The notes: a model not told the origin generated them from the sequence alone. A stretch of DNA of 64,000 nucleotides from Trichosphaerium sp. ATCC 40318 (GCA_038496445.1 JALMLS010000525.1:188264-252263); one strand, 5' to 3'. Shown: positions 49,626 through 64,000, counted from the stretch's first letter. Numbers and translations: made by a program.

Positions 49626-50462
49626 ATGGACACGGCTGACGTAATAGAGATATCAAGTGACGATGCTATGGAAATAACGGATGAAGAGAACAATGACTGC
49701 GTTATTGTTGAGTGCGAGGACCGTGTGGAGGGACCCAGATGCCCAATATGCTTAAATGCATTCACTGACCCCAGAATGTTGGACGTGTGTTTTCACACTT
49801 ATTGTTATCTGTGCATCATGCAATGGACGTCTGTATCCCGATCGTGCCCTTTATGTAAAGAAGAGTTTTCTTCATTGATAAAAGTTACAAATGACGACAC
49901 AAACGACTATGAACGTGTCTATTTAGATGATGCCAAAGCGTTGTCTACTGTACCGTCTACTTCTGGTCGTTCGCGCAGAAAAAAGTACACTGACACACAG
50001 TTCAGGGCTATGGTGTACAGCAAACATATGCAGCCGATAATTGATTTCGATTTGGTGCAAATACCGTTTGGACCAAGAGCACATGATTCATTTCCGCACA
50101 AGGCCAAAGATTACCTACAACAACGACAAAATAATTGGCTTTCCAAGTTTTCATCATGGCTGACACGTGAACTTGATGTATTACTGGACAGTCAACATGC
50201 AGATCAATCCTCTACCAAGACTTTGTTACTTCAAGTCATTGAAAAGATGTTAATAAAGTATGGCAATTTAAATGAACAAAAGGTGTATGAACAACTCCAT
50301 GGCTTTTTAGAAGAACACACATCACAGTTTATTTCAGAGGCTATGTTGTTTTTACAATCCCCTTACACACTGGCACAATTTGATAGACAAGTAAACTATC
50401 AAAGTCAGCATGGTACTATTTACACAGGCAAGTCTGGCAAATGGAAAAAATACAAACAATAA
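49626..50462 (+). CDS. RING-HC E3 ligase, Topors-like, single exon
   Basis: CPIC...CFHTYCYLCI..W...CPLC, followed by WLTREL, FLEEHTSQFISE and FLQSPYTLAQFD (Topors-like C-terminal segment). Confidence 0.8.
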   Translation: MDTADVIEISSDDAMEITDEENNDCVIVECEDRVEGPRCPICLNAFTDPRMLDVCFHTYCYLCIMQWTSVSRSCPLCKEEFSSLIKVTNDDTNDYERVYLDDAKALSTVPSTSGRSRRKKYTDTQFRAMVYSKHMQPIIDFDLVQIPFGPRAHDSFPHKAKDYLQQRQNNWLSKFSSWLTRELDVLLDSQHADQSSTKTLLLQVIEKMLIKYGNLNEQKVYEQLHGFLEEHTSQFISEAMLFLQSPYTLAQFDRQVNYQSQHGTIYTGKSGKWKKYKQ

Positions 50463-50841
50463 TGTACACTAATGTAAGTAATTAATAGTATTTTGTAATA
50501 TTTTTGATATTGTGTACCCTTCAAGGCAATCTTTTGATTATTAACAAATAACCACATTTTTACCATGTAATATCCTGTTTAAATAGCAATTGTTACATTT
50601 TTTCATAGTTCAAAATAGAAATCTTCATCTGATCATTCATCTGAGCTTTCATTGTCTGAATAATAGTTGTGCCTACTTGTCCTACATATGGGTGATGTTA
50701 GCGAATTAAGCTGTTGATATAAGTGGAATCTCATTATCAAATAAGAATGAATTCATGCATAATTGCACTGATATGTATAGTTGGCAAAATATTTAATAGT
50801 AGCCTCAAACCATCCATTCAGGTCTATGATGGATGAGCATT

Positions 50842-50891
50842 GAGATTTTGAACTGTTTCAAAAAAAAAAAAAAAAAGAGATTTTGAACTGT
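50842..50891 (+). mobile_element. Poly(A) micro-insertion flanked by a 15-bp direct repeat (retrotransposition scar)
   Basis: GAGATTTTGAACTGT (50842-50856) + TTC(A)17 + GAGATTTTGAACTGT (50877-50891). Confidence 0.6.
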
Positions 50892-50940
50892 ACTAAACTG
50901 TATGAAACCTGTATCTAATCTGTATGGATTCTGTACTGGA
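50877..50940 (+). repeat. Decayed remnant of the CCCGTAC subterminal array seen at 63681 onward
   Basis: GATTTTGAACTGTACTAAACTGTATGAAACCTGTAT aligns with GATTTTGACCCGTACTAAACCCGTACGGAACCCGTAC (63681), mostly through CG>TG changes. Confidence 0.6.
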
Positions 50941-50943
50941 TTT

Positions 50944-50961
50944 CAGTGGTGGAATCGGACA
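50944..50961 (+). repeat. Left terminal inverted repeat CAGTGGTGGAATCGGACA
   Basis: Exact reverse complement of 63359-63376; both are followed inward by TACGCG after a 1-3 nt spacer. Confidence 0.9.
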
Positions 50962-50969
50962 GTACGCGA

Positions 50970-51340
50970 ATGGCACGTTTTGGGCACGTTTTGGGCACGT
51001 TTTTTTTCCACGCAAATTGCACGTTTTGGGCACGTTTTGGGCACGTTTTTTTTCCACGCAAAAGGCACGTTTCTCTTCCACATGCTGGCCACGCAAATGG
51101 CACGTTTTGGGCACGTTTTGGGCACGCGGATTTTCCACGTTTTGGACACGTTTTGGGCATGCATATTTTCCACGTTTTGGGCACGTTTTGGACACGTTTA
51201 TTTCACACGTTTTGAACACGTTTTGGGCATGCATATTTCACACGTTTTGAGCACGTTTTGAGCACGCATATTTTCCACGCAAATGGCACGTTTTGGGCAC
51301 GCGTATTTTTCACGCAAATGGCACGTTTTGAGCACGCATA
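50970..51340 (+). repeat. Left subterminal array, 11-bp unit GCACGTTTTGG interspersed with CCACGCAAATG
   Basis: More than 20 copies of (G/A/C)CACGTTTT, visible directly. Confidence 0.9.
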
Positions 51341-51413
51341 ATACAGCAGTTGTTAACAAATTTTATAATATTTATTTAATTATATAAACCAACAATCGTT
51401 ACAAATAAATACA

Positions 51414-53869
51414 TTACTGCTCACTATCATCATCTTCATCTTGACTATCATCATCACTTTCAACAATATCCTCCAAAGAAAATGGCAGAGCAGCATCGTA
51501 TAATGTTAAAAAATGTTGTCTGGGTTTTAGTACAAATAAAACTAAGTATTTTTTAAATAAATCATAATGTCTTATTAACAACCTACCTCCTGGATGTTCA
51601 TCAGCAAATTTAATGTTTTTTGAGCTCCATAAAGAAGTGAATAGTTGTCCTAGTTTGTTTTGACGTGCTTTTTTTACAGTAGGATTTCGGCAAAAAATGT
51701 CAGGTGTTTTTATCTACAAAATAGTCAATTGAATATGATAAAAAGAACAAATAAGGCTTACCTTGGTGCAAAACTGTTTGACTGCTTCTAAAGTGGTTAA
51801 AGCAGCAGTACCTGGGTTGAAAATACTGCTGGATTTATATTGTATAGGTTCAAAAGAACTTTTCTTGCAATTGAAAGTTTGATTACAAACAAGTTTTGCA
51901 AATCTTGCAATAACATCTGCATCGTACTTGCAAGCTGTTTAAAATTAATGTCATTAAGTTTATTTGATAAAAACTATAACGTACTTGCAAAGTAGTAAAC
52001 TTTGGCAAAAGAAGGACGTATAAAAAACAATGTCCAAGTGCTAATGTTGAAATAAATATTTACGATCGGAATAAAAAAAAAAGTACCACAGTGGTAGAAA
52101 ATCATTATAAGTATCTACAGCAATTAGTTTGTCTTGTATTGGTACTGGCAATATATAATATTCTGCATAATCGTCATCTTCTGATTCTTTCTCTGAGTAA
52201 CACAATACTTTGCCCACTTTAGTTTTTTTCTTTGAAAAAAAATTATTAATAATTCCCAATATTGAAATGATTGATCGTACTCTGGTAAGCATTTTTGCTG
52301 TTCTAGTTTTAGAAAACAATCCAATATTAGGTTCTTTAGCATCCACTAAAACTCTAAATGCAGCATGAGTAATGAATGGTGGCTATGGTTTGTACTGAAG
52401 TATCATATCGGTAAATGCTTGTAAAGAAGGAGCAACAGATTCTCTTGTAAATAAAAAACAATAATCTGCAATTGTACTGTGCTTTAATAAGCAATACATG
52501 GGAGTATTCCATTGTAGTGTTGTGTAGTACTGTTCATCATCATCTATTGAAGTTCCATCTGATGGTCTGGGTTGTTCAACGATTGGTGATTTTTGTTTTG
52601 TTTTTTTTGGTTTCCTCTTTCGTAATAGACTTGATTCTTCTTTTTCTCCTTGTGCTTCATGTAATTTAAATGGAGTTATCAATTTTGGTGTAGTAGTTAA
52701 TTCAGATGAGTCAGACGATTCACTACAACAATCAATGAATAAAAAGGAAACAACCAAAAAAAAAAGAAAGCAAGCAATCGTACTCTAAACTGTCAACAGG
52801 TGTTGAGGTTTTTTGTTGTTTGGAGGTGTTTTTTTTAGCTTTTATAGCTGTGAGATATAGTTCCATACCTTCTTCATCAAGCTGTCTAATAAATATCAAT
52901 AAAACTTGAAATAAATGGAAAAAAAATTGTACTTGAACGATAGAGGTAAACTGGCCATCCCAATAAACATGCCCTTTTGTACAGGAACAAAAGGAATATG
53001 CTTGTTTTGCCATGCTTGTTTAGTAACTGCTTTTAAGTTGGCTATTAATCCATCAGTGCTTTGTTTGTAAAAACTATTGTCTGTATTTACGAATGCAATT
53101 AATTTTTTCTCTATATGAATGTATCAGTTCAAATTTGTTAAAAATGGCTTGCCTGCAAGTTCAAAAGCATGGTCCTCATTCTCAGTGATATAATTGAAAA
53201 ATTTTCTAGCAAATTGTCCCAATCGCCTGTTTACAGAATCTCTAATAAATTTTGACATTTTTGTTTTATGTATATCCTCCATTTCCGATCCAAATTGCAC
53301 TTTGAATTGTTTGGCAAGCTCCACATAAAAAGTGTCATCTTTAATGTGAGTATAAGGAAAGGCAAATAGCAATTTGGATCGTATCCAATCCTAATTATTT
53401 TTTAATTGTTAAGGGTTTTAAACAGATTTTTGGTTCAACGATCGTACCCATTTTCTCTTTTCAATGTCCTCAATTTGTTTGTGAGTTGTTATAAATTGTT
53501 TGAAGTTAGCTTCAATGGTCTTAACAGCTTTGGTTATTTCTAAAACACCTTTTTCAACATTTGAAAGTCTTTTATCCATCGCATCCTTCATAACATTTAT
53601 TGAATTCATCAATTCATCTAAAAACAATTAAATAAGGCAAAAACTAGGTAAACGATCGTACTGGTGGTTATGTTACCATAGGAATTTTCCAAAATCTCTT
53701 CAACTGATTCTGCTTCATTATTATTAACCAATCGCCTTCTTTTCTCAACTGTGCTATTTGTTCTGGATCGTTTTCTTTTGTTTGGTTGTTGTTTGCTTTT
53801 TTGAGGAGAAAATTGTTCCATATAACTATTTAGATCGTTTATAGCATTCATACCTTGAGAATTGTCCAT
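51414..53869 (-). CDS. Transposon accessory protein: NLS-like basic patch, coiled coil, possible catalytically dead Ulp1/C48-like C-terminal domain, acidic tail
   Basis: Multi-exon frame from MDNSQGMNA through KRKRSR and MDKRLSNVEKGVLEI to YYILPVP...TWTLFFIRPSFAKVYYFAT...FNPGTAALT...EDIVESDDDSQDEDDSEQ*. The domain call is by eye. Confidence 0.6.
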
Positions 53870-53947
53870 TGTATTGCTTTAATTAATTTAGAGATCGTAA
53901 TTGAATTAATTTTACCAATCGTAAGTCTTGGCTTTTCAAAATTACTT

Positions 53948-56900
53948 TTATTTATATACATTATCCATAGTAACTACTCCTACATACAATAAATCAGTCT
54001 GTACATGGAGATTTTAAAAACTTACCTTTATTGGCCATCATTTGATTGAAGTTATTGATTTCTTCATTGTGATTTGTACTTTGATCGGAATAAGAAGGAA
54101 CATAATAAGGAAGAGATTTACAACAACAACAATTAATGTTAGAAATACTGTAATCGTCTTCTATTTGATTAAAATGTAATCTTTCCTTACGAAATCTGGC
54201 AAAATCTTTACCATGCCATTTTGTTATGCCATGAAAATACCATTTTGTGATAACCCCTAAAGGTTTTTGACCTAAATTGTAAGTAAGTTGGAGTAGTATA
54301 TATGTACTTACTTGGTAAATGAGAAAATGCTTTGACATGGGCATCGTTATAATTAATTATTGGACATGGAGTTATAAAAAATGTACTTCCTTCATTTGAA
54401 TCGTTTCCCTTCCAGTTTTTTTGTAAGAAAAGAGACTGAGTCAGTATTGTTTTGGCATGAGTTAAAGTGTTAGGATCTTCTGGCATTTCAATAAAAGCCC
54501 AAGAGTCATGTACAAATCTGTAAGAAAATAAATTATTATTAAATGGAAAATAACATTTGTTGATCGTACTCATAAGAAACAAATCTATTCTTAAGCACAA
54601 CCTTTGCTCCAACAACTACACTTCCTTGGAAAGTTTTACATTCTTGAGAAATCAAATTCATTAATTGCAAGCTAATCACGATTAGTAATTTCAAAAATTG
54701 ATTTTTTTACCCATAATTATTGTAGATAATTAAATCTCCTTCATGTATTGACTGTTGATTAGTTTGTGGGTTAACTGCAAAAGCAGCACGGATAAGTAAG
54801 TGTTTGTTTGCTTGGGTTAAAGGATCATTTAAATCCAAATACAAGGCATGCTTCCAAACAAAGTTTCTTTTATAAGGATTGTCCCATCGTAATAAATTTT
54901 TCCTTAATAATTTCATTTTTTGTTGTACCACTGATGATATTTCTTCCTCTGGTTGCAATTGACGAAGAATGACACTGTAGAAGCCTTTATGCTGGTTGTT
55001 TTTAAATTGTACCCTTGCTCTATGTCTTATCGTTGAAGGCATGCCACCATGCAATGCCCAAGCAAAACTAATTCCATCTATTTGTACTGTTTTTTTTCTG
55101 GCTATTAAAAAAAATTGAACAATAAAAAAAATGTACATGCCATTACTTACCAATATCAGATAATTCAATCGTTTTAAAACAATCCACATGATTTACATCA
55201 TTTTTATCAGCAGGAAAACCAATTATTGTGATACCAGCAGTTGGATGTGCATGGCCTCCATCGGTGTGCCATCCCAAAGTGTTACTTTGTGTGTAATACT
55301 GTAAAAAAAATTACAAAAATATCAAAAATCGTAAAGAAATACCTTTATCTCTATGCTGTAATATTTAGAGTCATATTCTGTTTTAGTTTTACTGTGACCC
55401 CATAATAGAAAGTGTAGTTTATATAAACGGTGCAAAATAGTATTGTCAGTGGCAGATAAAGGGTTAGGAGGATGACAATGATTATTGCCATAAAGAATTG
55501 GATTATCAGTATCGTAAGGAGACAACCAAGGACCAGCTCCAAAAAAAGCTGCAGCATGTTTTGTCATGTAATTACATGTTAATAGATCAGTTGCTTTGCT
55601 TGCACGATACTAAATTCAAGTTAATACTTGTAAGAAAGAAATATGTACCATGTAATGTAATTTATCTTTATGTAATTCAATAAATTGTCTTAAATCGTTT
55701 ATTGTGTTTGCCATATACTGAGACTCATTCTTAATAACATATAGATTAGTTGTAACTCCATCTTTGTCCAGTTTATGATATTTAAGATGTATATCACATT
55801 CAGCTGTAGTCAGCTAAAGGTTTTGTAAGCACTTAAAACAAAAAAAAAAGTACCTTATCTGATTTAAATGTACGATTTCTTGAGTCATCAAAATGAATCG
55901 TAGGAATGTTGGATTTTGCTCTTTTTTTAATTTGTTTATGATAGCCATCCTTGAACACTTCTTCAGGATAGTCTGATCCTATATAAATGGTTTACAAATA
56001 AATGGTTGCAAAATGTCATTACTTACTTCCTGTTGTTATTGAATCGTAAGCCAACCGGATTTGTTTAACACTAGGAGCTTTATTTAAAGCTGATTTACTA
56101 GTGTGTTGATTTGTTACACTATCATATAAGGCTATATTACCAGCCACTTCATATAAGTGTTGTATAGAGCATTTTTCTCTACTACATAACTTGAACAAAA
56201 AATGTAAATATCGTAATAAGAATTCTGGATAATGTACCTCAACAATGACTTTTTGAGCAGCTTTTGATAACTGTTGTTGTGTAGGACGATGTATAGTTTT
56301 GATTTTATTCAATATGACATCTCTTTGTGGTTTTTGGACTTCTAATTTTATCTTAAAGTCTTCAGATGAATCTTTTTGTAAACCCATGCCATTGTTGTAT
56401 TTGTATAATGTGAGTACTGCATCGTATATGGCCTTTGTATATTCCTTTCTAAGTGTCTTATTTATATCTATTGTAGTTTTGTTTACTACAGCTATCTAAA
56501 TTCGAATTAGCCATTGACAAGTAAAAAATTAAACATATCAAACAAAACTCATTGTTGGACATTGAACAGCATGGCCAATCGCAATATAACCCACTGACAG
56601 CATATGAAGTGCAACATAATTGATAACAACATGTCTGATGGCAGCATAACAACCAGCACAATTGACATGGTCAACACGATTGTAACAAGCTGACACGATT
56701 GACATAGCCAACATGATTGACGATTGCAGCATAGCCAACACGATTGACATGGCCAACACGATTGACATAGCCGACACGAGCCGACACGAGCCGACACGAG
56801 CAGCATAGCCAACACGATTGACATAGCTGACACGATCGCAGCATAACCAACACGATTGACATAGCTGGCACGATCGCAGCATAGTCAACACAATTGACAT

Positions 56901-59749
56901 AGCTGACACGATCGCAGCATAACCAACACGATCAGCAACGATTGCAGCATAGCCAACACGATCAACATAGCCGACACGATCAACATAGTCAACATGATTG
57001 ACATGGCCAACACGATTGACATAGCTGACACGATCAGCATAGCCAACACGATTGACATAGCTGACACGATCGCAGCATAACCAACATGGTCAGCAACGAT
57101 TGCAGCATAGCCAACACGATCAACATAGCCGACACGATTGACATAGCTGACACGATCGCAGCATAACCAACACGATTGACATGGCCAACACGATTGACAT
57201 AGCCGACACGATCAGCATAGCCAACACGATTGACATAGCTGACACGATCGCAGCATAACCAACATGATTGACATAGCTGACACGATCACAGCATAGCCAA
57301 CATGATTGACGATTGCAGCATAGCCGACACGATTGACATAGCTGACACGATACAGCACAGCTGACATGATTGCAGCATAACTGCCATGATTAAAGCATAG
57401 CTGACACAGTACAGCACAATCGACACGATCACTGCAGCATAACCAATACGACTGCCACAGCATAGCCGATACAATACAGCACAGCCAACACGATACAGCA
57501 CAACCGACACGATCACTACAGCATAGCCTATACGATCACTGTGGCATAGCCAATATCAATTACAGCATAATCGATGCGATAACTGCAGCATAGCTGGTAC
57601 AATCACCGCAGCATAGCCGATACGATCACCACAGCATAGCTGATACGATCGCTGCAGCATAGCCGATACGATCACCACAGCATAGCTGACACAATCACTG
57701 CAGCATAGCCGATACGATCACCACAGCATAGCTGACACAATCACTGCAGCATAGCTGATACGATCACTGCAGCATAGCCGATACGATCACTGCAGCATAG
57801 CTGACACAATCACTGCAGCATAGCTGATATGATCACTGCAGCATAGCCGATACGATCACTGCAGCATAGCCGATACGATCACCACAGCATAGCTGACACA
57901 ATCACTGCAGCATAGCTGATACGATCACTGCAGCATAGCCGATACGATCACCACAGTATAGCCGATACGATCGCTGCAGCATAGCCGATACGATCACCAC
58001 AGCATAGCCGATACGATCACCACAGCATAGCCGATACGATCGCTGCAGCATAGCCGATACGATCACCACAGCATAGCTGATACGATCGCCGCAGCATAGC
58101 CGATACGATCACCACAGCATAGCTGCACAATCACTGCAGCATAGCCGATACGATCACCACAGCATAGCCAATACGATCACTGCAGCATAGCCGATACGAT
58201 CACTGCAGCATAACTGACACAATCGCTGCAGCATAGCCGATACGATCGCTGCAGCATAGCTGACACGATCGCCACAACATAGCCAATACAGCATAGCCAA
58301 TGCAGCATAGCTGGTACGATCACTAGTACTACGCAACATAGCTGACACAGCATAGCCAACAAGATCGCCAACGATGCGCAGCATAGCTGATACACAGCAT
58401 AGCCAACACGATCGCCAAACAATACATAGCATAGCCAATACACCATAGCCAACAAGATCGCGACGCAATCGCTAGCCGATACACAGCATAGCTGATACAG
58501 CAAAGCCGACACGATTGCCAACCGATACGCAGTATAGCTGATACACCAAAGCCGACACGATCGCTAACCTATACACAGCATAGCCGACACGATCGCTAAC
58601 CGATACACAGCATAGCCGATACAGCAAAGCCAACACGATCTAACCGATACGCAGCAAAGCCGACATGATCACCAGCCAATACGCAGCAGAGCCGACACGA
58701 TCGCTAACCGATACACAGCAGAGCCGAAACGATCGCTAAAACCGATACGCAGCATAGCAATACAGCAAAGCCGACACGATCGCTAGCCAATACGCAGCAG
58801 AGCTGAAACGATCACTAACCGATACGCAGCATAGCGATACAGCAAAGCCGACACGATCACCAGCTGACACGCAGCAAAGCCGACGCGATCGCTAACCGAT
58901 ACGCAGCATAGCCAATACAACAAAGCCGACGTGATCGCCAGCCGATACGCAGCAGAGCCGACGCGATCGCTAACCGATACGCAGCATAGCCAATACAGCA
59001 AAGCCGACGCGATCGCCAGCCGATACGCAGCAAAGCCGACACGATCGCTAACCGATACACAGCAAAGCCGACGCGATCGCTAACCGATACGCAGCATAGC
59101 CGATACAGCAAAGCCAACGTGATCGCCAGCCGATACGCAGCATAGCCGACGCGATCGCTAACCGATACGCAGCATAGCCGATACAGCAAAGCCGACGCGA
59201 TCGCCAGCCGATACGCAGCATAGCCGACACGATCGCTAACCGATACGCAGCCGACACGCAGCATAGCCGACGCGATCGCCAGCCGACACGCAGCATAGCC
59301 GACGCGATCGCTAACCGATACGCAGCATAGCCGACGCGATCGCCAGCCGACACGCAGCATAGCCAATACAGCAAAGCCGACGCGATCGCCAGCCGACACG
59401 CAGCATAGCTGACGCGATCGCTAACCAATACGCAGCATAGCCGTAACGATAGCCGATAGACGATGCAGTAGCCAATACGATACACCTAGCTGATACAACA
59501 CACCAATAGAGCCGATAGCCATCGTTTAGAGCATAATAGGTCAAAAATTCGTCAAAACATAAAACGAAGGCCTAAATAACAATAAATAGAGACATACCTC
59601 CTGTTTTAGCTTCAATTTGATCTCAAGTTCGTCTTTTGTTGTTTTTTGCCTTTTGGCTCTCTAAAGCCATATTTAATTACGAAACTACTTTAAATAGATA
59701 GAAAAGGTACAACAGAAGTATTGGGATCATTTATACTCCTCTTTGCCAT
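53948..59749 (-). CDS. Transposon-borne AlkB-like 2OG-Fe(II) dioxygenase with a possible C-terminal SRA/SAD-like domain
   Basis: Spliced core YYSIEIK/YYTQSNTLGWHTDGGHAHPTAGITIIG...VQIDGISFAWALHGGMPSTIRHRARV...GFYSVILRQ. HxD at 55268-55260, distal His at 55024-55022, terminal Arg at 54964-54962. 5' exons MAKRSINDPNTSV/RAKRQKTTKDELEIKLKLKQE lie at 59749-59598, beyond the satellite; that linkage is inferred. Exons from 56496 to 53948 join without stops. Confidence 0.7.
56600..59520. repeat. ~2.9-kb composite minisatellite (GCATAGCCGA/ACGATC core), probably intronic
   Basis: Three zones: about 56650-57340 (GCATAGCCAACACGATTGACATAGCTGACACGATC), about 57540-58260 (23-bp GCAGCATAGCCGATACGATCACT) and about 58540-59440 (32-bp ACGCAGCATAGCCGACGCGATCGCTAACCGAT plus variants). 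Confidence 0.92.
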
Positions 59750-59996
59750 CGTACAAGTGAGTTATTCGCAATTTAAGCAAAATTCAGAGAATTGTTGTTT
59801 TTTTACCTTTTTTAGAATTTCTTAGCTTAAATCGCACAGAAACAAAAAAAAACCACAAAACCAACATACCAGTAATAATATCTTTGTTTTAGAGACATCT
59901 TTTCATCATTACTTAATTACTTGAGATTTGGATTAAGGCATGATTTTATCAACAATTTTTTTTGGTCTCATCGTCATTTATTATTAGATTATTACC
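59750..59996. promoter_or_regulatory. Putative bidirectional promoter between the dioxygenase gene and the transposase
   Basis: A 247-bp AT-rich gap between divergent ATGs at 59749 (-) and 59997 (+); positional inference only. Confidence 0.45.
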
Positions 59997-62900
59997 ATGG
60001 CTTCTACCTATAAAAGATGTGTTTCTTGCAATATAGAAATTTCAGCTAGTAACTTTGCTAGACATCTTGCTTCTAAACAACATATTCAAAATATAACTTG
60101 GATTACACAAAAAGAGGTACCTACGATACCTTCTCCAAAACGATTCAAGTCAAACAACCATAAATCTGACTCAATTACTTCTCAACAATTTGCTTCATCT
60201 GCTGAAACTTTACAACCTGTTAATCATTCTTTCCAATTCTCACAATTATTACAACAAAATTTGACACAATTACAACATCAATCGTTACAACCATCTCAAC
60301 AACCTTCACAACAACCTTTGATTGAACTCCATTCTTCCATCACACCAGCCACATCAATTGATGTACTTAATGAAACAGTTCCAGTAGAACAACAATTGCA
60401 GTACATTAACGATCAACAGCTTACTCCTTTACAACAAGTAAAATATTTATTGGTTGCTTTACAACACGATAAAAAGCTATCACAAGTCCATATACAAACA
60501 ATGATACAATTTTTTAACCTTGCACGCTGTATTTTAAAAAAGGACAAACAACCAATACCTTTAAACATCAAAACTTTCCAACAACAGCTACCACAAGTAC
60601 TTTATCAAATAATTTAATTATTATACTTACATTATTGTAGTTTAATGTAAAGATAGCCACGAAATTATTGGATGTACAATACAAAGCATATAATCAATTC
60701 CATTCTATGTCTGTTCCCTATGTATCAGTTAAAGAATATATACGTTGGTACATGTATTCTTTGCCTACATTGGATTTAATCATTCCTAAAAAAGTACCTT
60801 TTAATGGATATTATTCTGGTATTGAAACTGGAGCGAAATATGCTGCCCTATTTGAAGATGTTACAGACAATGATGCAATATGCTTAGCAGGTTATTAATT
60901 ATTAATATTACCATGGTTATTAACTATTCATAGTGTACATAGCATGGGATGACTTTACCTTTGATAAAAAAGATTCTTTTGGACCAGTTTATATGTGTGT
61001 GTGGAACTTACGATTAACAAAAGCTGATGAAGATCCCATACAAGTTGTATTGACTATATTACCTAAAGGTACTTTGTGTGTACATAACTTTTATGCTAAG
61101 AAGATATTAGGAGTTATAATAGAAAGTGTTATTGCAGAATTGGTTGAAAATTTCAAAGAACTGTGGCATGGATTTGATTGTTTCGTAACTGCAAAGAATA
61201 AGGTTCTCACTTTCAATTAATCAAAAATCTTTAATATTTTATCAGCATTGCAAAGTGTATGTACGTTGGACAATGATGCTGGGAGATAGTGTTGGTTCCA
61301 ACAGGTTTATATGTAAGAACTTTGTAATTCATTATTTGTTTAATATATTATGTAGCAATGGCAGCTCCAACAAACAAAAGAGCATGCAGACTTTGTACAC
61401 AAAGACGTGGTCAATTTCATATTGACAATGTACATTTACGAAAACTAAGAAGAGCAGCTTCTATTGAAACAGTTGTTGGAAAAGTAAGTGTATTTACTTA
61501 TAAGTTGTTGATTTGATTTATTGTTAGTCAAATTACCCTGAACTTAGTGACAATTTAAAAAACAGCTATGGCATGAAAAGAAAAAGTCCTTTATTCGGCT
61601 TAATGCCATATAAATTTAATTTATTTTGGGATACTCCTTATTGTCCTTTCCACAACATGTTTTTGGGAATATTTAAAATATTACTATCTGCTACAGTTAC
61701 ATGGATGCAAATACAACCATGGACTCCTGAAGTTGGTGTAAAAACAAGTAGAACATGGATTCAAACACTAATCAGCAATAGAATTGACAAATACAAAGCT
61801 TCACCTGGTGTTGACATCGTAAAGTAAGTAAATAAACATGACATGCACATATTTAGTTTATATTAGAACCAAGCCCATTTGGAATAATGATGCAAAATTA
61901 CAGCTCAGTTCTTGGGATGGAGCTGACTGCCGATCATTTCTAAGAATGGCTTTATGGGTTTTTAAAGGTTTTTTACCCACTGAAAATGATTATGATTTAT
62001 CACAATTTGTTACCAAAACAGATACAAAAGGCCAATCGTACAAATACACTCCTAGTCAATGTGACATGATGCCAATGTGGTATTTTACATTGTTTATTTA
62101 CTTAATAACTATTATAGGATTTTGTTGGTGCATTTTATAGAAATAACTCAAAAAGACAAATTGTCAATTGACGAAACTGAAGCAATAACTGATTATTATG
62201 CCAAACTATTCAATACCATTGAAATTGTATTGCCTGGTACTGTTTGTATTAAATTTATAGCTGACTGTTACCAAGGGTTGAACAGAAACACAGTTAACTT
62301 TCACATTCCTTTTCATTATTCATTTATGGTAAAACGATTTGGAGTGTTTAAAAATTTCAGCACTTATGCTTGTGAACGGAGACAAAAAACAATCAAAGAT
62401 TGGAAACACAGTATTAAAAACAAACACAAGATACAGTACAAGCCAATAACTCTTTTAATCTAAATTATCTATTAGAGAATTAATGCAAAAAGAACTAACT
62501 TACATGCAACTCAAATTTACAAAGCAAAACTTAGTCACTATTTTTGAGACTCATGGATTTGAATATGAAAAACCTGTTAAATTATCTGATGCATGGCAAT
62601 TAGGTGAGTAAAAATGGTAGGTTATATATCTAAATATTTGATAGCAAATAGATACAATAATAGAACACTTACAAAGGAAGAAAAGTTTGTGTTTATTCGG
62701 GATACAAGATTTTATTTTGCTAAAGATGATACATTCCAAAACTACAATGGATTAAGTTCTTCTTTAAAAGCTGTGTCTATAAAAACCACTCAAAAGACAT
62801 GGTTTAAAGCAAAGCACCCAGCTAATAATACACAACATATTTTTGTTGCAACAGAAGCAATATTAAAACATGTTGACTTACAGCCGATATTTATTTTTGG

Positions 62901-63135
62901 CAGGTAAGCAAACATATGTTTAGTTTGTTAATTAATCTAAAATAGTGCACTTATTGTTGATGAATGTTTAACATACGATCCTGTTAGCACAATGTTACGG
63001 TTGAGAACAAGCAATGATTTTAAGACAGTGTGCATTAATGCAAACAACATTATTTATAATGCAGTGGTTATAGCAGATCCGATGGAACCAAACATTTATC
63101 TGGAAAATCACTATGAACATACAATACCAAATTAA
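59997..63135 (+). CDS. CMC-superfamily (EnSpm/CACTA/Plavaka-like) DDE transposase with an N-terminal C2H2 zinc finger
   Basis: CVSC...HLASKQH zinc finger. D1 in VYIAWDDF..GPVYMCVWNL, D2 in MMLGDS followed by CRLC, CPFHNMFLG, and NFHIPFHY..MVKRFG...NFSTYACER (catalytic E). About 10 GT-AG introns join without apparent stops. Confidence 0.8.
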
Positions 63136-63244
63136 CATCTATTTTACACTGTATACCCACACAATAAACATTCTGAGTACAAACACTGAATTTTATGTAG
63201 ATACAAGCTATTAATAACAGGGTACAAAAATCGTATTAGCAAAA

Positions 63245-63356
63245 TACGCAAATTGCACGTTTTGAGCACGTTTTGGGCACGTTTTTTTCCCACGCAAATG
63301 GCACGTTTTGGACACGTTTTTTTCCCACGCAAATGGCACGTTTTGAGCACGCGTAT
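63245..63356 (+). repeat. Right subterminal array, same GCACGTTTTG motif and same orientation as the left array
   Basis: CGCAAATTGCACGTTTTGAGCACGTTTTGGGCACGTTTTTTTCCCACGCAAATGGCACG..., nearly identical to 51011-51060. Confidence 0.9.
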
Positions 63357-63358
63357 TT

Positions 63359-63376
63359 TGTCCGATTCCACCACTG
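63359..63376 (-). repeat. Right terminal inverted repeat
   Basis: TGTCCGATTCCACCACTG is the reverse complement of 50944-50961. Confidence 0.9.
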
Positions 63377-63665
63377 TACTTAATTAGGCAAAAAATCTCA
63401 AATCCAATAAACGTCTTTAAAAAGGGGTTTAATGGAGTTATTGAGCCATAATATCCTTAAACTACTCTAAATATCTTTTTTCTATCGTTTTTGCCTTAAA
63501 AAGGCACTGAACCCCAAACCACCATAAAACCATGCATCATACCTAATAGTGGGCCATACTTCATTTTGTAAAGGATTGGGCAACAGAACATCTTTATCCT
63601 TCCACTTTGGTGGTTTCAATTCCAAACCTATCTATTGCCAACAACTTTAAGGCCTTTTTGTGATC

Positions 63666-64000
63666 CAGTACTGGAATCGGGATTTTGACCCGTACTAAAC
63701 CCGTACGGAACCCGTACTTTTGACCCGTACTTAACCCGTACGGAACCCGTACTTTTGACCCGTACTTAACCCGTACGGGTTCCGTATTGTTGACCCGTAC
63801 TCTACCCGTACGGGTTACGTACTTTTGACCCGTACTCAACCCGTACGGAACCCGTACTTTTGACCCGTACTCAACCCGTACGGAACCCGTACTTTTGACC
63901 CGTACTCAACCCGTATGGGTTCTGTACTTTTGATCCGGATTAAACCCGTACGTAACCTGTACTTTCGACCTGTACAAAACCCGTACGGAATCCGTACTTT
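63666..64000 (+). mobile_element. End of a second, related TIR element with a CCCGTAC subterminal array (runs off the window)
   Basis: CAGTACTGGAATCGG resembles the TIR start CAGTGGTGGAATCGG (13/15). It is immediately followed by a 35-bp unit containing three CCCGTAC motifs spaced 11/11/13 bp. Confidence 0.65.

Follow-up and report, generated by a model that had tools for sequence, protein, structure and literature searches.

A CpG-eroded DNA transposon of Trichosphaerium sp. ATCC 40318 in which the pentamer ACGAT is retained and over-represented

Element and features

A 64,000-nt stretch of Trichosphaerium sp. ATCC 40318 (GCA_038496445.1 JALMLS010000525.1:188264-252263), referred to below as the window, was analysed. 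It contains a 12.4-kb DNA transposon at 50944-63376, which is delimited by perfect 18-bp inverted repeats at both ends and is apparently intact. CpG has been eroded in this element by C-to-T change at CpG, and one pentamer, ACGAT, is exempt from the loss and enriched. The parts of the element are listed here with the observed/expected ratio (O/E) of CpG where it applies.

50944-50961, plus strand: left terminal inverted repeat (TIR), 18 bp, CAGTGGTGGAATCGGACA, 18/18 inverted match to 63359-63376
50962-51340, plus strand: left subterminal array of GGCACGTTTTG-type units; 33 CpGs, O/E 1.56, in CACGTT/CACGCA contexts
51360-56510, minus strand: cargo-gene region, AT-rich and CpG-eroded; GC 0.31, CpG O/E 0.47; CpGs evenly spaced
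56600-59450, plus strand: central tandem array (satellite) with units of ~18-23, 32 and 78 bp; 72 ACGAT, every one on the plus strand
59997-63135, plus strand: putative transposase gene with ~43-nt introns; CpG O/E 0.36
63236-63358, plus strand: right subterminal array of GCACGTTTTG units as in the left subterminal array; 11 CpGs, O/E 1.86
63359-63376, minus strand: right TIR, inverted match to the left TIR

The cargo gene (minus strand) and the transposase gene (plus strand) are divergent, with the 2.9-kb array between them. The transposase identity of the plus-strand gene is putative; the lead comes from the exon at 60924-61217, whose language-model features resemble the Transposase_21/Plavaka/RAG1 RNase-H clusters (score 0.89). 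The exons of this gene had no Pfam match, a homologue search with its exon 1 returned 0 matches, and metagenome scans gave 0 confirmed matches with the 98-aa transposase exon and 0 matches with the TIR pattern. Perfect TIRs and apparently intact reading frames suggest that the CpG pattern belongs to a living family and is not the decay of a dead copy.

CpG loss and the retained word

CpG O/E is 0.47 in the cargo half and 0.36 in the transposase half versus 0.91 in host DNA, and CpA/TpG O/E is 1.27-1.39 in the element versus 1.19 in the host. The host genes to the left of the element have a GC of 0.40. Gene models for all codon and exon/intron tests were our own crude splice-aware predictions, covering the element and 15 host genes. 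NAC (N, any base) stood before a G-starting codon other than GAT in 1/83 cases in the element, having given way to NAT there, and in 157/353 (44%) in the host. Before GAT, NAC was found in 13/30 cases in the element (34% in the host; element GAT versus other G-starting codons, Fisher 4e-8), and before non-G codons in 117/321 (51% in the host). Thr ACG was used in 6/21 cases before AT and in 1/135 elsewhere (host 13% and 19%), and Arg CGA:AGA was 10:5 in the A_T context and 6:42 elsewhere (host ~1:2 in both). Since these contrasts lie at synonymous sites, the exemption acts on the DNA, independent of the protein.

The same loss is seen among repeat units of the satellite. In its left part, the counts of intact/TG/CA forms were 7/11/8 for AGCCGACA, 0/0/7 for CGACGCGA and 25/5/1 for ACACGAT[C/T]. 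Units in which GCCGAC has become GCTGAC or GCCAAC retain CACGAT, GCGAT (=ATCGC) decays, and in the decayed left part CACGAT is nearly the sole remaining CpG. The CGACGCGA counts show that ACGAT in the array arises from CGCGAT as the CpG next to it decays. CpG is abundant in many contexts (O/E 1.5-1.9) in the right part, which adjoins the transposase start.

All CpGs of the cargo region (51360-56510) were listed with their flanks. There are 57, with 45 in ATCG/CGAT, 6 in TTCG/CGAA and 6 in other contexts, and the base at -1 is A or T at 55/57. ACGAT/ATCGT accounts for 37/57 and TACGAT/ATCGTA for 19. ATCG/CGAT holds 16/30 CpGs in the transposase half (59701-63200; ACGAT/ATCGT 12), 167/245 in the central array and 250/1860 (13%) in host DNA (2001-50000). 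An earlier note on this DNA had reached the same 57 and 45/6/6 by hand; the exact counts also agree with its statements that about half of the transposase-region CpGs lie in ATCG/CGAT, that the CGAT word is the core of the internal satellite and that host CpG is abundant across contexts. It had further placed the pattern in exons and introns alike, and the densities are 5.3/kb in crudely predicted exons, 4.7/kb in introns and 5.6/kb in other DNA. As to its related statement, that several intron donors read GTACGAT, there are six sense-strand GTACGA(T), two of them at predicted donors.

In host DNA, GTACGT (65 versus 21 expected) belongs to the hexamers with the strongest over-representation and is probably the preferred splice donor. 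Inside the element it is nearly lost (1), with GTACGA (7) and GTAAGT (8) instead. Introns of the transposase gene are uniform at 40-44 nt; the host median is ~45 nt (crude models, 2001-50000).

Markov nulls for ATCG/CGAT in the cargo region gave 10.9±3.3 (first order, maximum 23 in 300) and 19.6±4.7 (second order, maximum 36), against 45 observed. A synonymous-codon shuffle, which retains protein and codon usage, was applied to the predicted coding sequence (CDS) and gave 18.4±3.6 ATCG/CGAT (maximum 30 in 1000; 35 observed) and 9.4±2.6 ACGAT (28 observed); a further ACGAT shuffle gave 13.6±3.2 (38 observed). The enrichment thus beats the composition- and codon-matched null that the earlier note had named as the way to refute its claim. 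The shuffle proves context specificity only and cannot separate exemption from positive selection, and for this reason an expectation from host codon usage was added (see below).

When the 45 sites are oriented as CGAT, 37 have A in front of the word and none has T (P=5e-9 and 7e-11 in two calculations), the following base is rarely A (6/45, P=0.002) and the second base after the word is G or C in 30/45 (P=8e-7). Information is strongest at -1, +1 and +2 around the CpG, and on one side only +3 and +4 are significantly biased as well. ATCGA and ATCGAT have zero occurrences in the cargo region. The true word is the pentamer ACGAT with a weak 3' extension, and ATCG/CGAT is an approximation to it. 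The protected ATCG/CGAT context proposed previously therefore stands as one exempt context and is narrowed to ACGAT by the A at -1 and the absence of ATCGAT. A strand bias of 3:1 in the cargo region (34 ATCG versus 11 CGAT, P=0.0008) is confined to predicted exons (5-mer 22:6; introns 3:3) and hence probably reflects coding.

A double motif, the palindrome ACGATCGT of 8 bp, has two copies at 53438-53445 and 53652-53659, 214 bp apart, each inside AACGATCGTAC.

Over-representation and spacing

ACGAT ranks 1/60 among 5-mers of the same composition in the cargo region (37 occurrences; median 9-10; best CpG-free word 25), and TACGAT ranks 1/102; the ranks in host DNA are 45/60 and 90/102. Its O/E is 3.66 in the cargo region (next highest of the 16 A-xy-AT words, 1.67); the transposase half has 1.75 and the host 0.74. 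Densities per kb are 7.2 for the cargo region, 5.5 for the element outside the array, 25 for the array and 1.57 for the host. Over 56600-59520, ACGAT occurs 74 times on the plus strand and ATCGT 0 times.

Cargo proteins recoded with host codon usage and no CpG penalty gave an expected 150.7 CpGs and 12.0±3.1 ACGAT, and 44 and 28 were observed. The transposase-half proteins, recoded likewise, gave 98.2 and 5.9±2.4, and 26 and 10 were observed. Relative to this penalty-free expectation, non-motif CpGs stand at 12-17% and ACGAT at 170-230%; over both halves 38 ACGAT were observed versus ~18 expected. Survival alone is insufficient to account for the frequency of ACGAT. The previous account, erosion by deamination of 5-methylcytosine (5mC) with survival in an exempt context, is kept for the C-to-T loss (NAC 1/83, TG/CA satellite variants) and for the exempt context; bare survival is too weak given the excess over the penalty-free expectation.

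The coefficient of variation of CpG spacing is 0.50 in the cargo region (0/5000 random sets as low) and 0.58 in the transposase half (P=0.0004). Only 1 gap >177 bp was observed versus 8.4 expected, and short gaps are few too. No strict CpG periodicity above random expectation was found at 40-400 bp. The even spacing fits selection for coverage, and it also fits erosion that limits itself because CpGs left isolated are no longer kept methylated by maintenance.

The subterminal arrays (50962-51340 and 63236-63358) lie in the same (direct, not inverted) orientation, have a CpG O/E of 1.6-1.9 in CACGTT/CACGCA words and contain only 3 CATG decay variants. Since these CpGs are kept, a second CpG word would be protected in the same element.

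Neighbouring sequence

At 49626-50462 lies an intronless gene for a RING-finger protein of 278 aa. The identical protein is found in an MMETSP transcript and on a JGI metatranscriptome contig (sample 3300016894), which makes the host a cultured marine microbial eukaryote. No other homologue was found at E<=0.001 among candidates of comparable length. Two 200-aa host open reading frames (ORFs) had no Pfam domain. The end of the RING-finger gene and the intergenic DNA left of the element (50167-50943) contain 1 CpG in 777 bp, as if erosion spreads outward. The only other CpG-poor island in the window is 201-1000 (O/E 0.34), in an ORF with LRR_6 repeats at 80-1129, where CpG contexts are mixed. 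To the right of the element, CpG O/E is 1.33 over 63377-64000; this stretch contains a 35-bp tandem array at 63683-64000 (~9 copies, running past the window end) that is rich in ACCCGTAC / GTACGG CpGs and may be subterminal to another, adjacent element with a retained CpG word of its own.

Interpretation

The reading that we tentatively put first, at somewhat less than an even chance, is that ACGAT is a flank blind spot of the host's CpG methyltransferase and that the transposon lineage exploits it. The transposon (50944-63376) would be under CpG methylation, and C-to-T deamination of 5mC would have stripped CpG from both gene halves over the history of the family. A-CG-AT would escape this loss completely, most simply because it is unmethylated or not kept methylated, and the flank preference of the host enzyme would be the reason. 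The lineage would then have kept and accumulated ACGAT under selection along its body, leaving hardly any CpG-free gap >~175 bp, and also in the 2.9-kb array between the two divergent genes. The outcome would be a scaffold of CpGs that can neither be silenced nor mutated away.

A blind spot is favoured because the core information lies at -1 to +2, where flank effects of DNA methyltransferases are largest; for DNMT1 they peak at -2 to +2 (PMC10359454). DNMT3C has a documented flank preference matched to young mouse retrotransposons (PMC11099192). The present case is like these enzymes in that bases at -2 to +2 alter rates and that enzyme and transposon contexts can match. It differs in that enzyme rates were measured there, with an effect of ~10-fold for DNMT1 acting on hemimethylated substrate, whereas here there is an evolutionary footprint only, which looks all-or-none. 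The preference for this reading is narrow; a bound sequence-specific factor is nearly as likely.

As in methylation-driven CpG depletion and solo-WCGW sites, the repeat is CpG-depleted and the surviving CpGs are isolated and A/T-flanked. Unlike in ordinary CpG depletion, one pentamer stands at or above its penalty-free frequency. Solo-WCGW hypomethylation in mammals was reportedly described by Zhou et al. in 2018.

Several points weigh against a blind spot. The window contains no second CpG-eroded repeat family in which ACGAT could be seen to survive outside this element, and no methyltransferase gene was seen. ACGAT is 1/10 CpGs at 201-1000, and 50167-50943 has 1 CpG and 0 ACGAT; ~1.2-1.3 ACGAT would be expected in these stretches (800 and 777 bp), which are too small to tell. 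The flank effects of mammalian DNMT1 are only ~10-fold, on hemimethylated DNA (PMC10359454), and the exemption here looks complete. The extra information on one side only, with A avoided at +3 (P=0.002) and G/C preferred at +4 (P=8e-7), looks more like a protein-binding site. CpGs are kept as CACGTT by the subterminal arrays and in many contexts by the right satellite part, so something besides a blind spot would also protect CpGs. The codon tests rest on our crude gene predictions.

It is possible, though somewhat doubtful, that ACGAT(B)(S) is instead the binding word of a sequence-specific factor. The factor may come from the host or from the element, as a cargo protein or as the zinc finger at the N-terminus of the transposase. 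It would shield the CpG or recruit demethylation, making the word a selected 'self' tag with densely packed copies in the central array and scattered ones along the body, as VANDAL21 uses VANC21 targets. The over-representation of ACGAT, its first rank among words of the same composition and the one-sided +3/+4 information fit such a factor, as do the single orientation of 72/72 array copies between divergent genes and the even coverage of the element body. Another CpG word (CACGTTTTG), plausibly a binding site, is kept in the subterminal arrays. VANC21 offers a precedent, since its motif is concentrated in the parent element, forms tandem one-orientation arrays and has hypomethylation spreading from it (PMC5735166). 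Set against this, a word of 5-7 bp is weak for specific binding and is found at 1.6/kb in the host too; it lies in exons and introns alike, and VANC motifs are mainly non-coding. Searches of the cargo confirmed no DNA-binding, dioxygenase or SRA domain. The best-preserved right array is poor in ACGAT (1-3 per 200 bp), and CpG preservation there does not track the word.

One version of this idea, in which the element's own dioxygenase is the protector, was suggested in the earlier note and finds no statistical support here. Cargo exons carry residues (HTD, LHG) that could form an HxD...H triad. Searched as single exons, those with HxD...H-like residues had no Pfam match (E<=1) and no PDB match, although an intron-split divergent domain could escape such a search. 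One of these exons, of 161 aa, gave 0 matches in a phmmer search against 1.84 billion representatives, and the atlas features of the cargo exon carried no usable signal (top score 0.71, C2-like noise). A more specific form is unlikely: the word would be a 'self' tag read by an element-encoded protein (the cargo with HxD...H-like residues or the transposase finger) that holds precisely these CpGs free of methylation, with anti-silencing nucleated from the central array, making a VANC-like protist system, possibly with an oxidative eraser of a new family.

The likeness to VANDAL21/VANC21 of Arabidopsis (Hosaka et al. 2017, PMC5735166) is that a short word is enriched in the element versus the rest of the genome and lies in dense one-orientation tandem repeats near element genes, and by analogy may be tied to methylation escape. 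The VANC motif differs in being 9 bp, CpG-free and mainly non-coding, whereas the present word is 5-7 bp, includes a CpG and occurs in exons and introns alike; the host there is a plant and here a marine protist. DNA transposons that bear TET/JBP genes are also similar, being cut-and-paste elements with an extra gene beside the transposase that is proposed to counter methylation silencing. Perfect 18-bp TIRs are present here, and the putative transposase exon resembles EnSpm/Plavaka-type cores, as a lead. Unlike in those elements, single-exon searches detected no TET/JBP or 2OG-Fe(II) oxygenase domain in the cargo exons. To judge from term searches, the TET/JBP transposon paper apparently describes neither a CpG-context signature nor a central motif array.

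A pure methyltransferase blind spot with no selection is rather improbable. ACGAT would simply be undecayed, the array word would be a by-product of decay (CGCGAT to CACGAT), the spacing would come from self-limiting erosion, and the excess would be an artefact of crude nulls and models. The transposase half (10 versus 5.9±2.4) is indeed not significantly above the penalty-free expectation, and NAC before GAT (43%) does not significantly exceed the 36% non-CpG baseline (P=0.55). The CGACGCGA counts in the left satellite (0 intact, 7 CA) show array ACGAT arising by neighbouring-CpG decay, and CpG gaps are scarce at the short and the long end alike, a pattern that cooperative maintenance would predict. 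The cargo CDS speaks otherwise, with 28 ACGAT versus 12.0±3.1 (maximum 21 in 200) under a null that is conservative because host codon usage is GC-richer. CGA:AGA is 10:5 versus 76:163 in the host (P=0.009), ACGAT outranks CpG-free words of equal composition, and its cargo density is 4.6x that of host DNA, taken to be unmethylated.

Two further explanations have little weight. It is very improbable that cytosine methylation at the CpG is blocked by N6-methyladenine (6mA) which an MTA1c/AMT1-type enzyme places at the adjacent ApT. The word contains an ApT, and the rarity of A after CGAT (6/45) resembles the reported V-A-T-B preference. 6mA of this type marks the 5' ends of active genes and is not known to mark whole transposon bodies. 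ATCGAT, with an ApT on both sides, is absent, ATCGC/GCGAT, also with an ApT, decays in the array, the A at -1 (37/45, never T) is unrelated to ApT, and the over-representation is left unexplained. Directional creation of the word has just as little weight, whether A-T-G-A-T underwent T-to-C change specific to this context, or T:G-to-C:G repair, or small conversion tracts came from the central array. It would account for the over-representation of ACGAT, and TG follows CGAT 8x in the cargo region versus ~2.4 estimated from composition, resembling the array core ACGATTG/ACGATCG. The substrates, however, are undepleted (ATGAT O/E 0.88, host 0.81; ACAAT 1.67, host 1.41), by which creation of the T:G-repair type is ruled out, and the sites occupy each of the three codon phases in frames that are intact and that satellite conversion tracts would disrupt.

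A coding or compositional artefact or classical repeat-induced point mutation (RIP) is improbable in the extreme: the exon-confined 3:1 strand bias shows that coding shapes orientation, but the codon-matched shuffle is exceeded, intron density is equal and host genes show nothing similar, and RIP is ruled out by TpA/ApT of 0.87-0.90, (CpA+TpG)/(ApC+GpT) of 1.25-1.28 and an excess, not a depletion, of CpA.

Significance

Loss of CpG from methylated repeats is commonplace. It is out of the ordinary for a single pentamer to hold or exceed its unpenalised frequency when all other CpGs have dropped to 12-17%. The pattern offers a testable handle on one of two things: the flank specificity of a protist CpG methyltransferase together with a transposon that writes CpGs in its blind spot, or sequence-specific anti-silencing outside plants. 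If either is true, it would show how a mobile element keeps unmethylated CpGs, and hence an active promoter region, within a methylated body.

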